This document shows, one piece after another, positions 37,539 through 49,109 of a stretch of DNA of 53,065 nucleotides; the first letter of the stretch is position 1, and each line of letters begins with the position of its first letter. The notes under the pieces are model-generated. The model was not told the origin of the DNA. It searched no databases and worked only from the letters and a program-made list of their open reading frames with translations. Source of the stretch: Hyphochytrium catenoides (taxonomy: Eukaryota; Protista; Hyphochytriomycota); assembly GCA_900088475.1 (NCBI GenBank), contig FLMG01003187.1, positions 1 to 53,065 of the forward strand. Reading direction: 5' to 3'. A program made the position numbers and the translations under genes.

Positions 37539-38507
37539 TCAGGAGATAACTTTGTCCGCCATAGCTGTGACGTGTCTCACGTCAGTTCCACAGCATCCTC
37601 CCACCACGCGCAGGCTATCACCTAGAATCTCTTGTATGGAGCCATAACAATGGGCAAGCTCAAGCGGATCACCATCATCCAACTCATCACAATTGTCTAG
37701 CTCTTGATGGCTCTTCTTGCTTGCATTAGCACGTATGCACCCAATCCGCTTCCGCAGGCTAGCAGACATGGACTTCAAACTAGGTAAGAAATGACAAGGA
37801 TGAGAGCAATTGATTCCATAGTAGATGGCATAAGCATCAGTGGCGGCGTCCACCTTGGCGATTGCTTCAGCCAGGGTCATTCCAGTCTGAAGCTTTCCGT
37901 CTGTTTCCAGGGTGAAGGATACTACGACTGGAAGATGGAACTCCTGAGCGAGCTCCACGACAGCGATGGACTCGACAAGGCTTGACGTGGTCATTATGCT
38001 CACCACGTCCACTCCGGCTCTGCTAAAGGTCTCAAACTGAGAGTAGTAAAAGTTCTTTGCTGTCTCAACCGTCATCACTTCATTCCCGTCTGTCTGTTGA
38101 TAAGCATCACCCAGGGGCCCCACGTTTCCGCTGATAACAATTGTCATTCCTTTTTTCTCATAGTACTCTCCTTTGAGCTCTTGAAGTAGCTGAACAGCTG
38201 CATGGTTTAGTTTGATGATCTCTTCTTTAGAGTAGCCCATTTGCTCTCCCCAGTAGTCGCTTGCCCTCCAAGTGGGAGTCTCCAGTACGATCCCGCGCTG
38301 TAGCTTTGCAGCTAGCTGGACGTAGGGCTCGTAGACTGTACGCAATAGTTGTCTGCCTTCGTCAGTGACCAACAAAGTGAAGGCTGCGAAGTAGGGAAGG
38401 TCTTGTCCGTGATGGAATGTAAGAGTGGACTCAATGCCGCCTTCAGTTAGAAAAGGCTTCGTGGAGGCGAGCTGTGGTACGCTGTTAGGCTGACAGTCCT
38501 CCTGCAT
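37539..38507 (-). CDS. Homocysteine S-methyltransferase family protein (Hcy-binding TIM barrel), bacterial-type
   Basis: Intronless, likely ATG at 38507. Motifs: LTEGGIES.L.FH.G.DLP.FAAF, LETPTWRAS, GNVGP.GD.Y, SFTLETDG.L, GINC.HP and GGCCG (the three Zn-binding Cys). Confidence 0.92.
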   Translation of the reverse strand: MQEDCQPNSVPQLASTKPFLTEGGIESTLTFHHGQDLPYFAAFTLLVTDEGRQLLRTVYEPYVQLAAKLQRGIVLETPTWRASDYWGEQMGYSKEEIIKLNHAAVQLLQELKGEYYEKKGMTIVISGNVGPLGDAYQQTDGNEVMTVETAKNFYYSQFETFSRAGVDVVSIMTTSSLVESIAVVELAQEFHLPVVVSFTLETDGKLQTGMTLAEAIAKVDAATDAYAIYYGINCSHPCHFLPSLKSMSASLRKRIGCIRANASKKSHQELDNCDELDDGDPLELAHCYGSIQEILGDSLRVVGGCCGTDVRHVTAMADKVIS

Positions 38508-38864
38508 AGTTGCTTTGAGGTGGACGCAGATGCAGTCCGGCGGAGTGTTCACCTTGTTGTTAGTGTCTGGGTCAAATGTAGAATGAGCTGCTGCAGACGA
38601 GAGGCTGCTTGCTCAACTTGTTCTGGTGCGACCACTATCTGACATGATTGTCCCTTGAGCACGAGGAGGACAATAGAGGATCTCTTCCCCATACGATGCT
38701 CGTGCTCTTAGCTAACCTTTTTGAAAGCAGGACGGCGATGATGCACGATGGCAGGAGAACAAGTACTATTACCTAGCTGGCTAAGGAAGAAAGTGGGAAG
38801 AGAAGTGTGCAGGCATGATAAGGAAGAAACTGGGGCGATGAACTGAATGAACGCCAAGTTGTAG

Positions 38865-40660: not shown

Positions 40661-43600
40661 TTAACCACTGTCTTCTTTCTCTTCGCGGTTGGTCTCAATC
40701 ACCGCACGGATTATCTGTCGCCATAGTCTTCGGAAGAAGAGGCGCCGCTCCTCTCCAGATAAAGCTTTCAACCTGTTCTTTATTACCTGATCGTTAAGCT
40801 TGTTCTTTCTCCTTTTGCTCTTATTCAAGCCTGTCCGTGACGTCTTCTCAACCTGACAAAAAAAGTGTTGAAGAATTTGAAAAGGCAGAGTGATTGACTC
40901 TTGGACGGCGCATAAAGGGTACCAACCTCGAGGCCAGAGAAGAGAATGAGCACTATCACGATGAAGGCCATACTGACAGTTCCCCAATCCAAGTTGCTTG
41001 ACGTGGCGAGAGAGAGGATGATATAGTAGGACGAGAGAAAGAACTGCATTATCAGCAGCAGTTCCTCCGTGAAGTTGTCGACCGGATCTATCAGAAGCAG
41101 CAGCGGTCAAAAGGATTAGACACAATCGGAGCTTCCTCAGGAAGACATCGGCGCCATCGAGAAAGACTCTACCTCGGAACGGCTTCTTTCTCAGCTGGGA
41201 AATAAGAGAGAAAAGCCATAGTACGCAGAGCATCAGCGAGCTCAACATCATGGATGTCTGTGTCTCCAGGATGACAGCAACTAGAACATTCTGCGTGATC
41301 TTCCAGAGGATCCAGTGCTCCATGTTGGGCTTGAGATAGTCAAATAGCACGTGAATATATCCATTTACTATGCACCGATCCACTGTTTCGGTAGCCGATG
41401 GTAATAGGAGATGAAGAGTCGATGTGGTCAGGGTTATCCTTAGCAAGAATGGAGGCCGTCAGGTCGCAGCTAGGATTGATAGCGACCTACCCTTGACAAA
41501 GCCAGCCACAATGACGTAGGGCCGGGCGCTGCTCACGTTGTGATCTTTCCATAGATAGCCGCAAGACATCTGAAGACCGGCAATCGCGGCACAGAGGAAT
41601 AGAAGAAAGTACGCAAAGCTCCGTCCTGATCGATAGTCGCTGCTCTCCAGAGTGATGCTGGCGTCAAGCTTCATCACCTAAACGGGAACGGCAGTCAGAA
41701 TGGGAGCAGGTCTCTTTGTTAAATAGCCAAAGCCTAGGGATAGGTCAAGAATGATGTTCTTACCTTTTGTCCCGCAATATCGCGCAGAACAATGAGCTGG
41801 AGCGCAGATCTCAAGAGAGGAAAGAGCAGGATATGGATCATGAGCTGGATGAAGATCTGAATCACCTGAAAGAAGAGGGACCACGTGTCAAAAAGTCTAG
41901 CCCTAGCGAAGACTCTGATAAGTGAAGCCTGGCCCTTACCCGTCTCTTCCAGAATCTCAGCTCCAATGCGGCTACAAGCAAGCAACGGAAAGTTAGTTTT
42001 GCTTCCTTTGTGCTCAAAGGGCGGATACGATGTTGGTCCTACCGTCACGAAGCGATGCTTTGGTCACAGTCTTCAACTTGAGTCGAGCGCTATAGAGAAG
42101 AGATCACGGATGTACAGAGAAAGAAGGTGAGAAGCTCCATTATGCTAAGCGAGAGAGAGAGAAAGAGAGAGAGAGAAAGAGAAAGAGAGAGAGAGTTAGA
42201 CAGAGAGAGAGAGAGAGATTATGACTATGGCAGATAGGAATTGATAGGACGCACTTGGTAGTCATTTCCTGAGGGAACATCAAGTCGACGACTTCGCCTA
42301 TATTGCGAAGGTGGTGGCGAGTGACAAGATAATAGTACACTCCGCTGGCAAGAGGGAACATCAGGGCCGCAAAGATCCAAAGGAGAGCTCCATCCACTAA
42401 GTGCGATACGATTGTGCCATAGCCTAAAAAGCCGCAGTTCTGGAGGATAGAGGTTGAAGAAAAAGACAATGTCAGGGGAAACGTCTGCTGCCATTGAGAA
42501 TGGAAAGAAGAGAAAAAAGTAACGTACATAGTCGCCATTATAGGCTGGAGGCAGGTCGTAGCCGAAGATCTCTAGGATACCCAGCACTGGCGTCCGACCT
42601 GAAGGAGAGGACTGTCCAAGCGCAAATTGTACTGCTCGGGATGCGATGTCAGGAGAGAAACTTTGTCAGATAAGAAGCGGAGAAGGAGATTAGCTGATGA
42701 TGCCAAAAGGGACAAGGCTGGTGGTGCTCTTGCATCCCGCGGCTTACCTTGTAAGAAGTAGATGACCAGTGTGGCCAGCCCAGAGATCTCGTTTGCATCT
42801 TGCAGCAGCGCAAGTAGAATACTGAAGAAGCCTAGCAGCGCCACTCCGACCCATAGCAAGACCTTCGCCTGTTGCTCCACACCAGTGCAGACTGGGTAGT
42901 AGTACACATACATGGCGACGGGAATTTTATCAAACAAGAGTAGGAACTAGTGCCGACACTTCTCTAGAGTGGTGACTTCAACTCACCTTCTGGCGCTTGG
43001 CATTGTGGCCCCAGCTTGACAAAGCCATCTTGGCAGCCCATGCAGAGCAGAGAGGTGTTAGTATACTCAAGGCCACAGCCGGAGACTGTTCCAAAGAGCT
43101 CTAATTCGTTCGGCTGCCGCTGCCCTGAACAAGAGCTTATGTTAGAAAGAATCCTGCAAGGTCGGAGCGCTATTCCATCGGGAGATAGACCGGTACCTGG
43201 GCAGAACTCGAGGCCACACTCGTAAGTGTTGGCAGTTAAGATCCGATCGGCGGCATTGGTCACAGCGTCTGACGTGGTGAGGGACCAGAGCTCCGCTTTT
43301 AAGAGCTGTTAAGCGGCAAAGCGGTCGTTACTTTCCCTTTCTTGAGCGGCATCACTGGTGGGCACAGGCTCACCTCTTTCTCAATAGATTTATGGTCAAC
43401 CCAATAGCCGGGCCGAGCGAAGAAGCGATCTTGCCCCTCACACCGTAGCATGTCGTTGACGGAGAAGCACGCAACGCACGTCAATCCGTCGATGCCAAAG
43501 AATCCTGAGAAGGCAGGATAAGCCCAGAGAAGAGAAAGAATGGCTTAGCCTTATAGAGAATAGGACATCCTCAAGTCTTAATCACTAACCAGCTCTCATC

Positions 43601-46109
43601 CCTCTTACCTGGCGGGCAATCGACACAGATCCCTTGCATGAACTGCTGACCACGCTTGCAGGCTAAGAAGGAGAACGTAAAAGAATGCTTTAGTCTGCTG
43701 ATCATCGTTGAATAATCGACAAGAGGGCAAGCAGGTACACCTACATCGCTTAAGCGCCGAAGGGTCTCGGCAGTCAAAGTGGTTCCAGCCAACGTCATAG
43801 GTGTCCTTTCCACAGCTAAAGTGTGCTGAAGACTTGCAGGTCGATGGACAGCAGTCCCCACCGTCCCAATTGCACGCTTCATTATTATTATCAGGGTCGC
43901 ACCAGCCGTCAGCCTTCCACTCAGGAAAGGCACAGACTCCCCCGTCTCTTGGTCGGGCAAGACAGGCGGGAGAAAATGTACAGGTTGTCTGCATCTGCTC
44001 CTCAGAGGCCACAAAAGCCGGCCCGGTCATAACCAGAGGATTCAGGACTGACAGACCAGTCAAGGCGTACAGCTGCAGCAGGACGATGGGGATATAGCCC
44101 TGAAGATACTGCTGCTGGTTGATGCCAAAGAGTATCTCTCCGTCAACGACAGCTTTTTGAACGGCATCACTGAGGTCAAAGGTACCGATCTTTACCCCGG
44201 AAATGGAGTTTGAACGGAGAAAGTTTAGCACCGGTGGAACGATGGAGGCTGAGGTGAGAAGCATCCCATCTGGCTGGCTAGAGTTAGGATAGAGCGCGCC
44301 TAAGGCAGCGTCAGTGACGGCCATGTTAGAGATCGAGACAATGACAATCTCTCTCGCGCTCTCACTGACTTGCAGTCCGTCAAAGTAGCCTTTGCAACGT
44401 TCCTCGAGCGCTGTGTTCCCGGCTTCTCCGATGAGACAAATGGGGCGCACAATGCCCTTGGACTTCATAAGCTTTCCTGCACCGACTCCAGCTTCATATT
44501 CTGTCTGTCCCACGTGGGTTAGGACAGTGATACCGATCGCATTGCCCACCTTATATCCTGAGTTAGCAGAGATTAGAGGCACCGTGCTGGCCTGAGCATT
44601 ACGAAGAGCGTCCTTCAAGCCGTCAGGATTAGGGATGGAGACGACTAGACCTTGAGGCTTCTGCTGGACAGCCTTCTCAATCAGATTGCTCATGACGCCC
44701 ATATCAAACTCCGTGCCTGGCGCAGAGTAAGAGAGAGGCTCTTCTCCCGTGCATGTGGATCCCACGATACTGCAGAAGGTGAAGTCCAGGCCCGTGTCGT
44801 TGCCAGCCATGCGAACGCCTTGCTGATAAACATACCAAAAGCCATCAAAGGACGCACCGTGAACCACAATGCGAAGACGGAGATCCTTCTGCGTCACTGT
44901 CCGCGGCAAAGGCGGCGTTGACAAGAACTTGGGCCCCGTGAGGATGTCAATCTGTGGCCTCTCGCCAATGGTGCCATAGATCACCATGAGGACAGTAGAA
45001 AGATAGCCTTGGAGAAACTGTTGCTGATCAACGACGAAGAACAGCTGATTGTCTTGGAGAAGCCTGGTTGTCTCTGACGTGAGGTCAAAGGTACCGATCT
45101 TCACAGCTTTCTCCTTTCCCATAGACTGCAATAGATCGTAGACAGCACTGCCCATGCCTGAGCTCAGCGTTAAGATGCCATTGATGGACGGCTTTGTCTG
45201 CAATAAGTTCTTCAGCACCTCCTTGGCCCTATAGGTGTTGCTCCCATCGACAGTGACAGTCTCCACCGTGCAGTTAACACCTTTGATGCAGCTTCCTAGC
45301 AATCCATCGGTAAAGCCCTGGCAGCGCTGGGTCAGAGACTTGTCGCTCTGGTCGTGAATGACGCAGACGGCGCCTGAGGCCTCTGTCTTGGCAAACTTAA
45401 CGCCTGCCGACTGTCCCGTCGGATAGTCTTCCATGCCGAAGTGCATCTCACTGAGAGCTAGCGTCGTGTTGGCCGTGTTGATGCTGAAGAGACGGTAGCC
45501 TTTGTTCCTCATCTCTAGGACTTTATCCTCACTACCAGCAGGGATCGTCGTGATAAACAGATGGCTCTTTGGGTCTAAGTTCGCTGTCAGTGCTCGGTTA
45601 AGCAGCGCTGAGACCACCTTCCCGCTGGAGCCCTGATAGGTGTCCAGGCGCTCCATGGCGGTGACGTACTCAAAGGATGTCTTGACTTTAAGTGCCTTTC
45701 CTGCCTCGTAGAACCCCGAGCGGACCTCTCTCCAGAGCTGGCTCTGCGTGGGATCGCCATGAGAGATCATATGCACTGTCAGCGCTTGGCGGTTAATGCA
45801 GGGACATGTCGAGGCCGCATCGTTCTGCGGATGCTCCTGCAGCCCACGATGTTGATAATAAGCAGTAGTGCTGGCCGTCGTGCTACTACGCCCGTTGCTG
45901 CTGCTAATGAAAGAGGATGTAGGAGTCACGGCGATGGCTCCGCCCGCCGCCAGCAGCCAGTTGAAGGCGAAGAAAACTGCTGGGAGAAACATGGCCAGAG
46001 ACCGAAGACGATGACCAGCAGCAGCAGCAGCAGACAAAGAAGGCAGCGCCGGTTCACAAGCAGCAGCAGCAGCAGCAGCGGGTGCCCGTAGTAGCAGCAA
46101 CAGCCTCAT
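40661..46109 (-). CDS. Multi-exon surface receptor: signal peptide, two periplasmic sugar-binding (PBP1) domains, LNR repeat, Cys-rich repeats and a C-terminal multi-TM (about 7TM) domain
   Basis: Exon 1 runs from 46109 (or ATG 45992) to 43745, with HG...W, RCxG, GTFD and (D/N)QQQ.LQGY motifs twice and an LNR (WKADGWCD..NN.EAC.WDGGDCC). In-frame GT-AG joins continue to exons 43662-43609, 43504-43374, 43305-42987 and 42891-42748 (CVDCPPGFFG, ARPGYW, LLCMGCQDGF, VIYFLQ). Later exons carry KLDASI, LFDYLKP..HW and KPFR.PVDNFTE. Junctions between about 42750 and 41400, and the last exon, are approximate. Confidence 0.85.
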
Positions 46110-46259
46110 GTTGGTGACTGTCTTCTACGGGGAGACCGACGATCCGCGAAATGGGAAAGAGCAGAAGAGAAGAGAGACTCTGATGTCTTCGGCGAGAGGG
46201 AAAAGAAAGGAGAAGAGAGGCCTCTTCCCGTCCTCCCCAAGGGAATGTCGAAGCCTCTT

Positions 46260-46263
46260 CTCT

Positions 46264-46333
<70 letters not shown>

Positions 46334-46586
46334 GTCTCTTTCTCCGTGAAACGAACAGTCACTTGAAGGGTTTGAGTGATGCATGACAGGCGTATTATTT
46401 CTTGCGTACTGTACATGATACCTTACGTTGAAGGGCTACAACGATCTTACTACGTTCCCCGGTGGGGGGGGGGCGGGGAGGAGGCACGTTTCTATGTTGC
46501 ATTACTTTCCCTCTGTCTCTCTCTCTCCCTGCTGTACGTGGCCGTTGAGAGGTGAAAAATAGAGAAAGAGAGAGAAAGAGAGAGAG

Positions 46587-46617
<31 letters not shown>

Positions 46618-46689
46618 AAAAGAGATAGAGAGAAGAGGGAGAGAAAGGAAGAGAGAGAAAGAGAGAGAGAGAAAGAGAGAGAGAAAGAA

Positions 46690-46760
<71 letters not shown>

Positions 46761-46815
46761 AAAAGAGAGAGAGAGAAGAGGGAGAGAAAGGAAGAGAGAG
46801 AGAAAGAAAGAAAGA

Positions 46816-46851
<36 letters not shown>

Positions 46852-47030
46852 AAGAGAGAGAGAGAAAGAGAGAGATGGGTGAAGAGAGAGTGAAAAGGAG
46901 AGCCAGACACAGAAAGAGAGAGAGAGAGGGAAAGAGGACAAAGAGACACAGAGAAAGAGAGAGAAGTAAAGAGGGTCAGAGAGAGACAGAGACAGAGAGA
47001 GATGGGGGGCGAGAAGGAGATAGAGACAGA
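46260..47030. repeat. (CT)n tract (46260-46342) and long GA/GAAA tract (46558-47030) in the divergent intergenic region
   Basis: Directly visible. A G-run lies between them at about 46464-46484. Confidence 0.95.
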
Positions 47031-47510
47031 GGCGGGACTGGAGGTGGTTACGGAGCGCCGAGGAGACGTCGAGGAGATACAATGGAGATACGGGAAGGAA
47101 GAGAGAGCCACAAGGAAGAGAAAGATGGTGGAGAAGGTGCTAGACAGAGTAGTTCCTACGAGGCGGCGCGGCGCGGTGCGGCCCCATCACGGGGAAGGTT
47201 GCTGGGAGGGTCTCTCAGAAGAGAGAGAGAGAGAGAGACAGCGTGAAGAAACGAGAGGAAGAGACGTGAGCTCATCCAGACGACGTCCTCTTCCTTTCCG
47301 CTACGCCTCTTCTCTTCTTCCCGCTTCCTTTCTCTGCCGGTGATACCTTTCCCTTGGTTGATTGGCTGCAGTTTACTTCTTAACTAGGAAAGAGAGAGCA
47401 AGCAGCAGCAGCAGCGCCTCTTCTGTCTGACTCATAGCTCCTCGTGGTGAGTTCCTTCCTTGGCGTGATTATTGGATTGGCAGTGGCAGCAGCGAGGAGG
47501 TTCCATCACC

Positions 47511-49109
47511 ATGCGGAGCCCATCATCAGCACATGCAGAAGGGGAGGACCGGAAGGCATATCTGGATGGCAGCCACAACGCCTGGGCGCACTCTCTGGGC
47601 ATTGCCGTGGTCGTGCTGGACCTCACAGCGCTGCCCGTCCTGCTGTTCATGCTGTGGCGACGAAGGGGCTTCTTCCCGCTCAACTCTACTCCTACTTTCC
47701 TTCTCCTCTGGACCCAGCTGGGCGCCAGTCTCTATGTCTTCTCTCTTCTCCAGTCGATCGTAGCGCCTACGATGCCTTGCTGGCTGCACATCTTCCTCTC
47801 CGTCTCAGATGGCTTTCCCTTCTTCAGTGGAAGCGCTTGTCAGCTCTTCAATGCGTGGTTTGTCTCTGAGTTGAAGCAAAGTGTTGCTCTAGGAAAGAAG
47901 AATGTGTTCACTAAGCGCTGCACAGCTGTGTCTGAAGGCTCTCTGAGGACTCTCTTTCTGCTCGCAGCCGTCATCTTTGGGATCCTTCCCTTAGTTCTGC
48001 AGTTAGCTGGTCGTCCTAGCGCCGTGCTGTCTGGATCGATGATGCAAGCCGAGTGTCTGACTTACTTTTCAAAGGCTGAGGTAAGCACATCAGGGACAGA
48101 GGATGCTTTCTCAGGCCTCCATCTCTAACCCTAAGCACTTTTCCTTCTGCCTGCCTGCTACTGCTCCGTCCACTCTTATAGAAGTGGATCCTACGGGTTC
48201 TATGGTGGGTTCCTGTCTCTTTGAACGTGCTCTTTGCCTACCTCATGCGGCACATGAAAGACGCCTTCAATCTGAAGGAGAACTGGAAGAGCATTCTCTA
48301 CTTTTTCGTCCTTGGGGCGCCGCTTAACGCTATGGCTAATGTTACCACGGGACTGGACGACACCATCCGCATCAACACCTACGTGGTTGGGCAGTTTGCC
48401 TTTGTATGTGCAGGCTTCTCTTACATGTGGTTCGCGTCTATCCTTCCGTTGAAGAGATCGATGGAGGAAGATGAAGAGCTCCGCAAGAGCAAGAATGCTG
48501 CCGCTTCCTATGCGGACTCTGGCCCCTCTGCAACCAAAAGGAACTCTATGACAAGTGGCGCGATCCCGACACTCATCCCTGTGTCCACGACCAAGGATCT
48601 CCGTCTTGCCCTACAGCGCCAAGACGTTGCCATCCAGTTCCAGTTGTACCTGGTCCGAGAGTTTGCCGGTAAGCTCTAGCAGCGGCTAATGTCCCGATAG
48701 ATAGTCAGTTAGATCGAAGTCCCTGACTTGCTCTGTGTACTCTCTAGTCGAGAATATGCTGTTTATCCAGGCATTAAGGGAGCTACGCGCGATCACGGAT
48801 AGAGAGAGTAGAGTTTCCCGCGCTCTAGAGATCTCGCGTGACTTTATCCGCGAGGGCAGTCCTTCGGAGATCAATATCAAAGACGACCTTCGAAGGGAGC
48901 TCCTCAGGAAGATAGACAGCAGCGAAAGGAAAGCGTCCTCGTCCTCCTCAGAAGATATTGATATCAACATCTTCAACCCTGCGGAGGATCAGGTGCTTCA
49001 GATGATGATAGATCCCTATAATCGCTTCATTCGTCTGCTGAGCGATCCTGCCAGCAAGAAGCGCAGCATGCAACGAAGACAGGTAACAGTCATCAAGCCA
49101 GCTCAGTAA
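47511..49109 (+). CDS. 7TM-RGS protein (regulator of G-protein signalling), join(47511..48080, 48182..48668, 48748..49109), 472 aa
   Basis: Two GTAAGC...AG introns restore a single frame. About 7 hydrophobic segments, RRGFFPL after TM1 and KDAFNLKE after TM5. Splicing creates the RGS motif FQLYLVREFA-VENMLF, followed by I.RDFI.EGSPSEINI and IFNPAEDQVLQMM.DPYNRF. Confidence 0.92.

Follow-up and report, generated by a model that had tools for sequence, protein, structure and literature searches.

A divergent pair of genes in Hyphochytrium catenoides encoding a predicted sugar-binding multi-helix receptor and a 7TM-RGS protein

Do two membrane signalling genes that lie head to head make up one sensor, or are they merely neighbours? 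The question is raised by a contig of 53,065 nucleotides from the protist Hyphochytrium catenoides (Hyphochytriomycota; contig FLMG01003187.1 of assembly GCA_900088475.1, positions 1 to 53,065 of the forward strand), which was analysed as a whole and is called the window below; it is eukaryotic, and its introns are short and of the GT-AG type. It carries, on the minus strand, a gene for a predicted receptor with two periplasmic-binding-protein (PBP) domains of the sugar-binding type and, divergently on the plus strand, a gene for a seven-transmembrane protein with a regulator of G-protein signalling domain (7TM-RGS). An earlier interpretation made from the letters alone (the sequence-only reading) had proposed that the two form a sugar-sensing G-protein module. 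On balance we lean slightly towards another view, namely that these are two intact, separate signalling genes which share a GA-rich spacer and whose adjacency is incidental. Each gene would then come from a family expanded in this protist, and the head-to-head position would be due to chance, or would be the leftover of a local duplication, and would be no proof of a module.

Two intact genes and the spacer between them

The receptor gene was modelled by hand (Table 1). Its first exon is open over 834 codons, and 13 more exons join downstream; every junction is GT-AG, the introns measure 68-165 nt and there are zero internal stops. Two acceptors (43305/43290 and 41382/41367) are ambiguous, with the frame kept either way. 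The signal peptide begins at Met40 (45992), which is an alternative to the start at 46109, and is followed in order by two Peripla_BP_4 domains, an LNR-like module, a Cys-rich stalk, 9-10 helices and a basic tail. The seventh intron (165 nt) houses a (GA)34 microsatellite at 42151-42218. In the 7TM-RGS gene the two introns, of 101 and 79 nt, have the form GTAAGC...AG.

Natural variation bears on both models. Three DNA runs of H. catenoides supplied contigs for comparison with the window, from which they differ at many sites. None of the 20 variant positions listed for the receptor ectodomain, which fall in 19 codons, alters the protein; they include a two-base Arg-to-Arg codon change, counted as a unit. 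The receptor has four amino-acid changes, all of them in the signal-peptide region (codons 39-50; 45960-45999). Eight of the nine coding variants in the 7TM-RGS gene are synonymous, and three further variants lie in its predicted first intron. Since the differences between strains or alleles are almost all synonymous, both genes are under purifying selection and both reading frames are supported.

The two ATGs, at 46109 and 47511, are 1402 bp apart; measured from Met40 the distance is 1519 bp. Both values agree with the 1.4-1.5 kb first estimated for this divergent pair. The accompanying description of the spacer as mostly CT/GA microsatellite was roughly right: the arrays located by Tandem Repeats Finder (TRF) total 532 bp, or 38% of the spacer, while purine-or-pyrimidine tracts (20 nt, 90% purine or pyrimidine) take up 60% of it, versus 7.7% of the whole window. 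One array, (CT)n, is the reverse complement of the other, (AG)n, and together they give inverted arms at 46254-46344 and 46554-46898 (85-91 nt, 86-88% complementary), so that the upstream tract reads GA-rich on the sense strand of each gene. Arms of this kind could fold into a hairpin or a triplex. Six other sites of the window have similar GA tracts; the tract in the spacer is therefore not special to the pair and looks like a habit of the genome. That GA tracts are common in the window, and that a spacer of 1.4-1.5 kb is not tight, both favour an incidental adjacency.

A different kind of accident would be an assembly join made across the long GA microsatellite, in which case the adjacency would not be present in the genome at all. 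Short-read contigs reach both flanks of the spacer, and none from the three runs crosses 46604-46991, so the join across the array depends on the window's own assembly. In run X1, moreover, there are loose ends, with one contig departing from the window after 46033 and another joining at 46506. This alternative sequence in part of the spacer, which would suit a faulty join, suggests another allele, one with a replacement of the receptor-proximal part of the spacer together with its CT array (46033-46506). We consider a false join very improbable, as the contigs extend through unique sequence to the very edge of the arrays from either side, the contig method skips repeats by design, and the window is a 53-kb contig where the runs yield contigs of up to 53,978 bases.

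Table 1. Features of the receptor gene, the 7TM-RGS gene and their shared spacer (positions in the window)
Feature	Position	Strand	Description
Receptor gene	40661..46109	minus	hand-built model, predicted: 14 exons, 1399 aa
Receptor exons 1-7	46109-43745, 43662-43609, 43504-43374, 43305-42987, 42891-42748, 42598-42528, 42439-42255	minus	hand-built model
Receptor exons 8-14	42089-42043, 41971-41940, 41865-41764, 41677-41491, 41382-41173, 41087-40927, 40852-40661	minus	hand-built model
First Peripla_BP_4 domain	44940..45812	minus	residues about 100-390; Pfam PF13407 and PDB matches
Second Peripla_BP_4 domain	43995..44897	minus	residues about 405-705; best Pfam stretch 460-681
LNR-like Cys-rich module	43746..43937	minus	residues about 725-788; motif DGWCDP..N..C.WDGGDCC
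Cys-rich stalk, exons 2-4	42987..43662	minus	C..C..CP.G repeats, resembling ephrin-receptor-like type
Membrane domain, exons 5-13	40927..42891	minus	9-10 hydrophobic helices (hydropathy), residues about 965-1340
Cytoplasmic tail, exon 14	40661..40852	minus	about 60 aa, basic; amphipathic stretch RRLFFRRLWRQIIRAVI (40664-40760)
Shared 5' spacer	46110..47510	.	(CT)n 46255-46344 and (AG)n 46561-47002 by TRF
7TM-RGS gene	47511..49109	plus	predicted model, 472 aa; 3 exons 47511-48080, 48182-48668, 48748-49109
Seven-helix domain	47595..48451	plus	residues about 29-280; hydropathy shows seven peaks, residues 31 to 278
RGS box	48584..49040	plus	residues about 325-450, interrupted by second intron

The 7TM-RGS protein

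The plus-strand gene had been named a 7TM-RGS gene from its letters, and the analysis confirmed this through the seven hydropathy peaks and a match to the Pfam RGS family (PF00615) on exon 3, with an E-value of 1.2e-9 and a score of 39 bits, where the cut-off is 23.9. Two cysteines occupy the places of the disulfide conserved in G-protein-coupled receptors (GPCRs): Cys90 tops helix 3, and Cys182 belongs to the second outer loop. The seven-helix domain itself matched no Pfam family. A class C identity was considered for these helices and rejected, a 7tm_3 profile built from 30 protist domains scoring about 0 bits. An alignment with RGS16 shows the E-N pair retained in the RGS box, and likewise the Asn of SxE(V/I)N (EINI versus EVNI); the Asp and Arg of its last helix, DPYNRF, were judged by eye. 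Because the extracellular part before the first helix amounts to only about 29 residues, the protein has no ligand-binding ectodomain of its own.

From the gene model, the product is predicted to be a receptor with GTPase-activating-protein (GAP) function of the AtRGS1 design, in which seven helices are joined to an RGS box with G-alpha contact motifs. The likeness to the AtRGS1 type is one of layout, with seven N-terminal helices first and the RGS box at the C-terminus. AtRGS1 has about 459 residues, as against 472 here. The difference lies in copy number: the plant type is single copy, whereas read contigs of H. catenoides match the 7TM-RGS gene only at short conserved parts (47715-47746 and 48245-48306) and diverge outside them, which points to paralogues in the genome. 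The 7TM-RGS design is widespread in bikonts, and an RGS family can have many members, 47 in Ectocarpus for example (PMC3971589). For AtRGS1 a link to sugar has been reported (PMC3718340).

The receptor and its relatives

Pfam Peripla_BP_4 (PF13407) matches the receptor in two stretches (E 1.7e-41). Residues 124-387 are matched by the sugar-binding proteins of PDB entries 2qvc, 2h3h and 3c6q (E about 3e-9) and residues 473-702 by the CUT2 monosaccharide binding protein 4ru1 (E 7.6e-21), so that the nearest solved relatives of the ectodomain are CUT2 monosaccharide binding proteins. The binding domains are of the sugar-ABC (ATP-binding cassette) type, not ANF_receptor, and supply an extracellular PBP or Venus-flytrap module such as class C GPCRs have. 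A survey of solved Peripla_BP_4 proteins lists only monosaccharides and autoinducer-2 as ligands (PMC10443332). The sequence-only reading had spoken of a multi-helix receptor with a sugar-binding domain, and of PBP1-type domains binding monosaccharides or polyols; the receptor description stands with the two Peripla_BP_4 domains, the CUT2 relatives and the 9-10 helices, and for the second statement the domain identity was verified.

A word-index protein search with the 834-residue exon returned a sole match, P0001, from a bacterial ABC operon for inositol catabolism. P0001 (L001 10001-12073) is a 690 amino acid binding protein with tandem Peripla_BP_4 domains, and Pfam domains of the iolD, iolE and iolG types are present in its operon neighbours. 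Two-domain bacterial proteins of this kind, perhaps inositol binders, may be the source of the tandem head in the eukaryotic receptors. Given the CUT2 structural relatives, the ligands in the Peripla_BP_4 survey and the place of P0001 in an inositol operon, a sugar or polyol is, by fair inference, the predicted ligand of the receptor.

Next to the binding domains, the LNR-like module aligns column for column with database proteins P0006 and P0002. Pfam assigns LNR/Notch to the matching segment of P0006 (E 1.3e-4); LNR was not reported in the Pfam scan of the window's receptor at E 0.01. The stalk repeats are aligned, weakly, by the profile of a family of Picozoa-type proteins, the P0010 family, which is taken up below.

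No close relatives of the receptor were found in about 15 billion proteins, the best identity being 31%. An exhaustive HMMER search gave 2488 matches, of which the best, at that identity, is P0002 from the labyrinthulomycete Mucochytrium, and two metagenome scans gave nothing, or LNR-only matches. The best database matches are proteins that combine tandem Peripla_BP_4 with 7tm_3, some of them with LNR (P0002, P0006, P0012, P0065 and P0074), and a sugar-type PBP is combined with the class C 7tm_3 domain in 30 of the best 151 hits. Like the class C GPCRs and protist PBP-7tm_3 receptors, the T1R sweet receptors included, the window's receptor joins an outer PBP or Venus-flytrap part through a Cys-rich linker to a membrane domain of several helices. 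For Phaeodactylum, a diatom, class C receptors whose heads resemble ABC sugar-binding proteins have been published (PMC3727952). The occurrence of PBP-7tm_3 proteins in other protists implies that the usual solution is a single chain and not a pair of proteins. A further match, P0007 (L005 10001-16570), has 2189 amino acids with a sugar-type PBP, HisKA, HATPase and a receiver domain, and adjoins a Vps4-like gene; on account of this neighbour it is probably eukaryotic, and its domains make it probably a hybrid histidine kinase with a sugar-binding head.

The likeness to class C receptors ends at the membrane. A class C membrane domain was rejected for the receptor as well: the score of the 30-domain protist 7tm_3 profile is again about 0 bits, and there are 9-10 helices rather than seven. 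Without a 7tm_3 signal and with this number of helices, direct coupling of the receptor to a G protein cannot be assumed. BLAST and phmmer comparisons of the membrane domain with the best 151 of the 2488 hits revealed no homology.

The only database family that shares the receptor's non-class-C layout is the P0010 family. Both have a tandem sugar-PBP head, Cys-rich repeats, a non-class-C multi-helix domain and one shared motif segment. They differ in that the P0010 family (two PBPs, PA, Ephrin_rec_like and multiple transmembrane helices) alone has the PA domain and the window's receptor alone has LNR, and the membrane similarity is marginal. For the full layout of the receptor (two sugar PBPs, LNR, Cys-rich stalk and non-class-C multi-helix domain) no description was found in the searchable literature. 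The apicomplexan CRMPs, which are nine-helix receptors with Cys repeats and an output not yet known, and which PANTHER predicts to be GPCR-like (PMC9670195), bear a looser likeness to it, as do the TRP/Flc proteins of PF06011; the CRMPs were compared by description only.

These family ties raise the possibility that the receptor acts alone, as a ligand-modulated channel of the TRP/Flc type, an 'ionotropic' sugar sensor comparable to the PBP-derived glutamate receptor channels, for which the RGS neighbour would be irrelevant. The argument runs through the P0010 family, which shares the receptor's layout. When the P0010-type membrane domain was modelled by AlphaFold2 (AF2), the model matched ESM Atlas clusters with Pfam TRP (PF06011) at TM 0.65 over 324 residues, others giving TM 0.52-0.62; a language-model search for the P0010 type also reaches PF06011 and Ephrin_rec_like clusters; and P0157, of the same family, has a PF06011 match below threshold (E 0.007). 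The 9-10 helices fit a family of the P0010/PF06011 type, and the basic amphipathic tail would suit control by calmodulin. By this modelling route, a lead through two weak steps, the receptor's membrane domain is possibly TRP/Flc-like and perhaps a channel. Of the two steps, that from the receptor to the P0010 family is weak: the P0010-family membrane profile matches at one segment of 60-70 residues, HWILWK...LRKKPFRDPVDN (HMMER E 1.7e-5, calculated for a single target), and hhalign of the receptor with the family's membrane domain gave a probability of 15.7%. As to the other, the AF2 model reaches a middling pLDDT of 62.6 and found no meaningful match in the PDB (Foldseek E at least 0.026; VIA Z at most 8), and exon-wise Pfam scans of the receptor gave no PF06011 match. 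We therefore regard a stand-alone channel as quite improbable.

No recognisable output domain was seen in the translation of the tail. Its stretch RRLFFRRLWRQIIRAVI looks like a calmodulin-binding or membrane-surface helix, and is the sole candidate output element of the receptor.

One sensor or two neighbours

Conserved synteny had been put forward as a check on the proposed module. Among the distant relatives located on contigs, the adjacency is not conserved. No RGS-like sequence is present at loci L002-L010, which hold distant relatives of the receptor, and no RGS gene lies on the contigs of P0157 and P0162 (P0010 family), P0153 (class C type) or P0007 (histidine-kinase type). Nor did any sugar-PBP receptor among the best 151 hits have an RGS domain. 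Within the 53-kb window no paralogues were found, and none of the genes checked near the pair is related to G proteins. The next recognisable gene downstream of the receptor (37539-38552, minus strand) has a homocysteine S-methyltransferase domain (Pfam E 2.6e-39) and is unrelated to signalling.

Two points weigh against an incidental adjacency. The first is that the relatives available for synteny are very distant: no match exceeds 31% identity, hence there is no orthologue for the comparison, and the absence of an RGS neighbour is weak evidence. The second is that the receptor has no recognisable output domain and therefore needs a partner or a pore.

The 7TM-RGS protein could be that partner. 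In the sensor so conceived, the PBP receptor would detect a sugar or polyol and act within the membrane on a co-expressed 7TM-RGS; the GAP activity or the trafficking of the latter would change, and with it the level of G-alpha-GTP. The GA/CT spacer would serve as a bidirectional promoter. In its favour, the genes are divergent with no gene between them, the receptor is without an output domain and the 7TM-RGS without a ligand-binding ectodomain. There is also a precedent in plants. Besides the sugar link of AtRGS1 (PMC3718340), receptor kinases have been proposed to act on AtRGS1 and so to bring about G-protein activation (PMC5575782), which makes them the nearest analogue to the sensor considered here, a separate ligand-binding receptor controlling a 7TM-RGS. 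The plant kinases differ in that they phosphorylate RGS1, while the window's receptor has neither a kinase nor any other output domain. The remark of the sequence-only reading that this pairing had not been described holds for the searchable literature; the concept of a separate receptor acting on a 7TM-RGS has been anticipated in plants (PMC5575782).

Against the sensor, conserved adjacency was found in none of the relatives located on contigs, no sequence signal links the two membrane domains, neither of which is class C, and the organism's read contigs indicate paralogues of the 7TM-RGS. We judge a functional two-gene sensor rather unlikely on this evidence; coupling of the receptor to the 7TM-RGS is a hypothesis prompted solely by their adjacency. 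A stricter form of the idea, in our estimation unlikely, is that of a recurrent, co-duplicating two-gene cassette in which a nutrient receptor facing outwards would control a membrane GAP and, through it, a self-activating G protein, as a protist counterpart of the plant receptor-RGS1 arrangement.

If, as we are inclined to think, the two genes are neighbours by accident, each protein may still be given a plausible mode of action. Closure of the binding domains on the ligand would be passed through the LNR-like module and the Cys-rich stalk to the 9-10-helix membrane domain, which is not class C and possibly of the TRP/Flc (PF06011) type, so that the output of the receptor might be an ion flux; alternatively, the short basic tail might recruit a partner. 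The 7TM-RGS protein, for its part, would keep G-alpha GDP-bound for as long as no signal removes or inhibits the 7TM-RGS.

The solid outcome is a set of two well-defined genes, together with a receptor layout that is new to the literature we could search. How 7TM-RGS proteins perceive their signals is unclear even in plants, where the effect of sugar may be indirect. Should the coupling be true, H. catenoides would offer a 7TM-RGS protein paired with a receptor whose ligand class, a monosaccharide or polyol, can be predicted, and thus a tractable test system.

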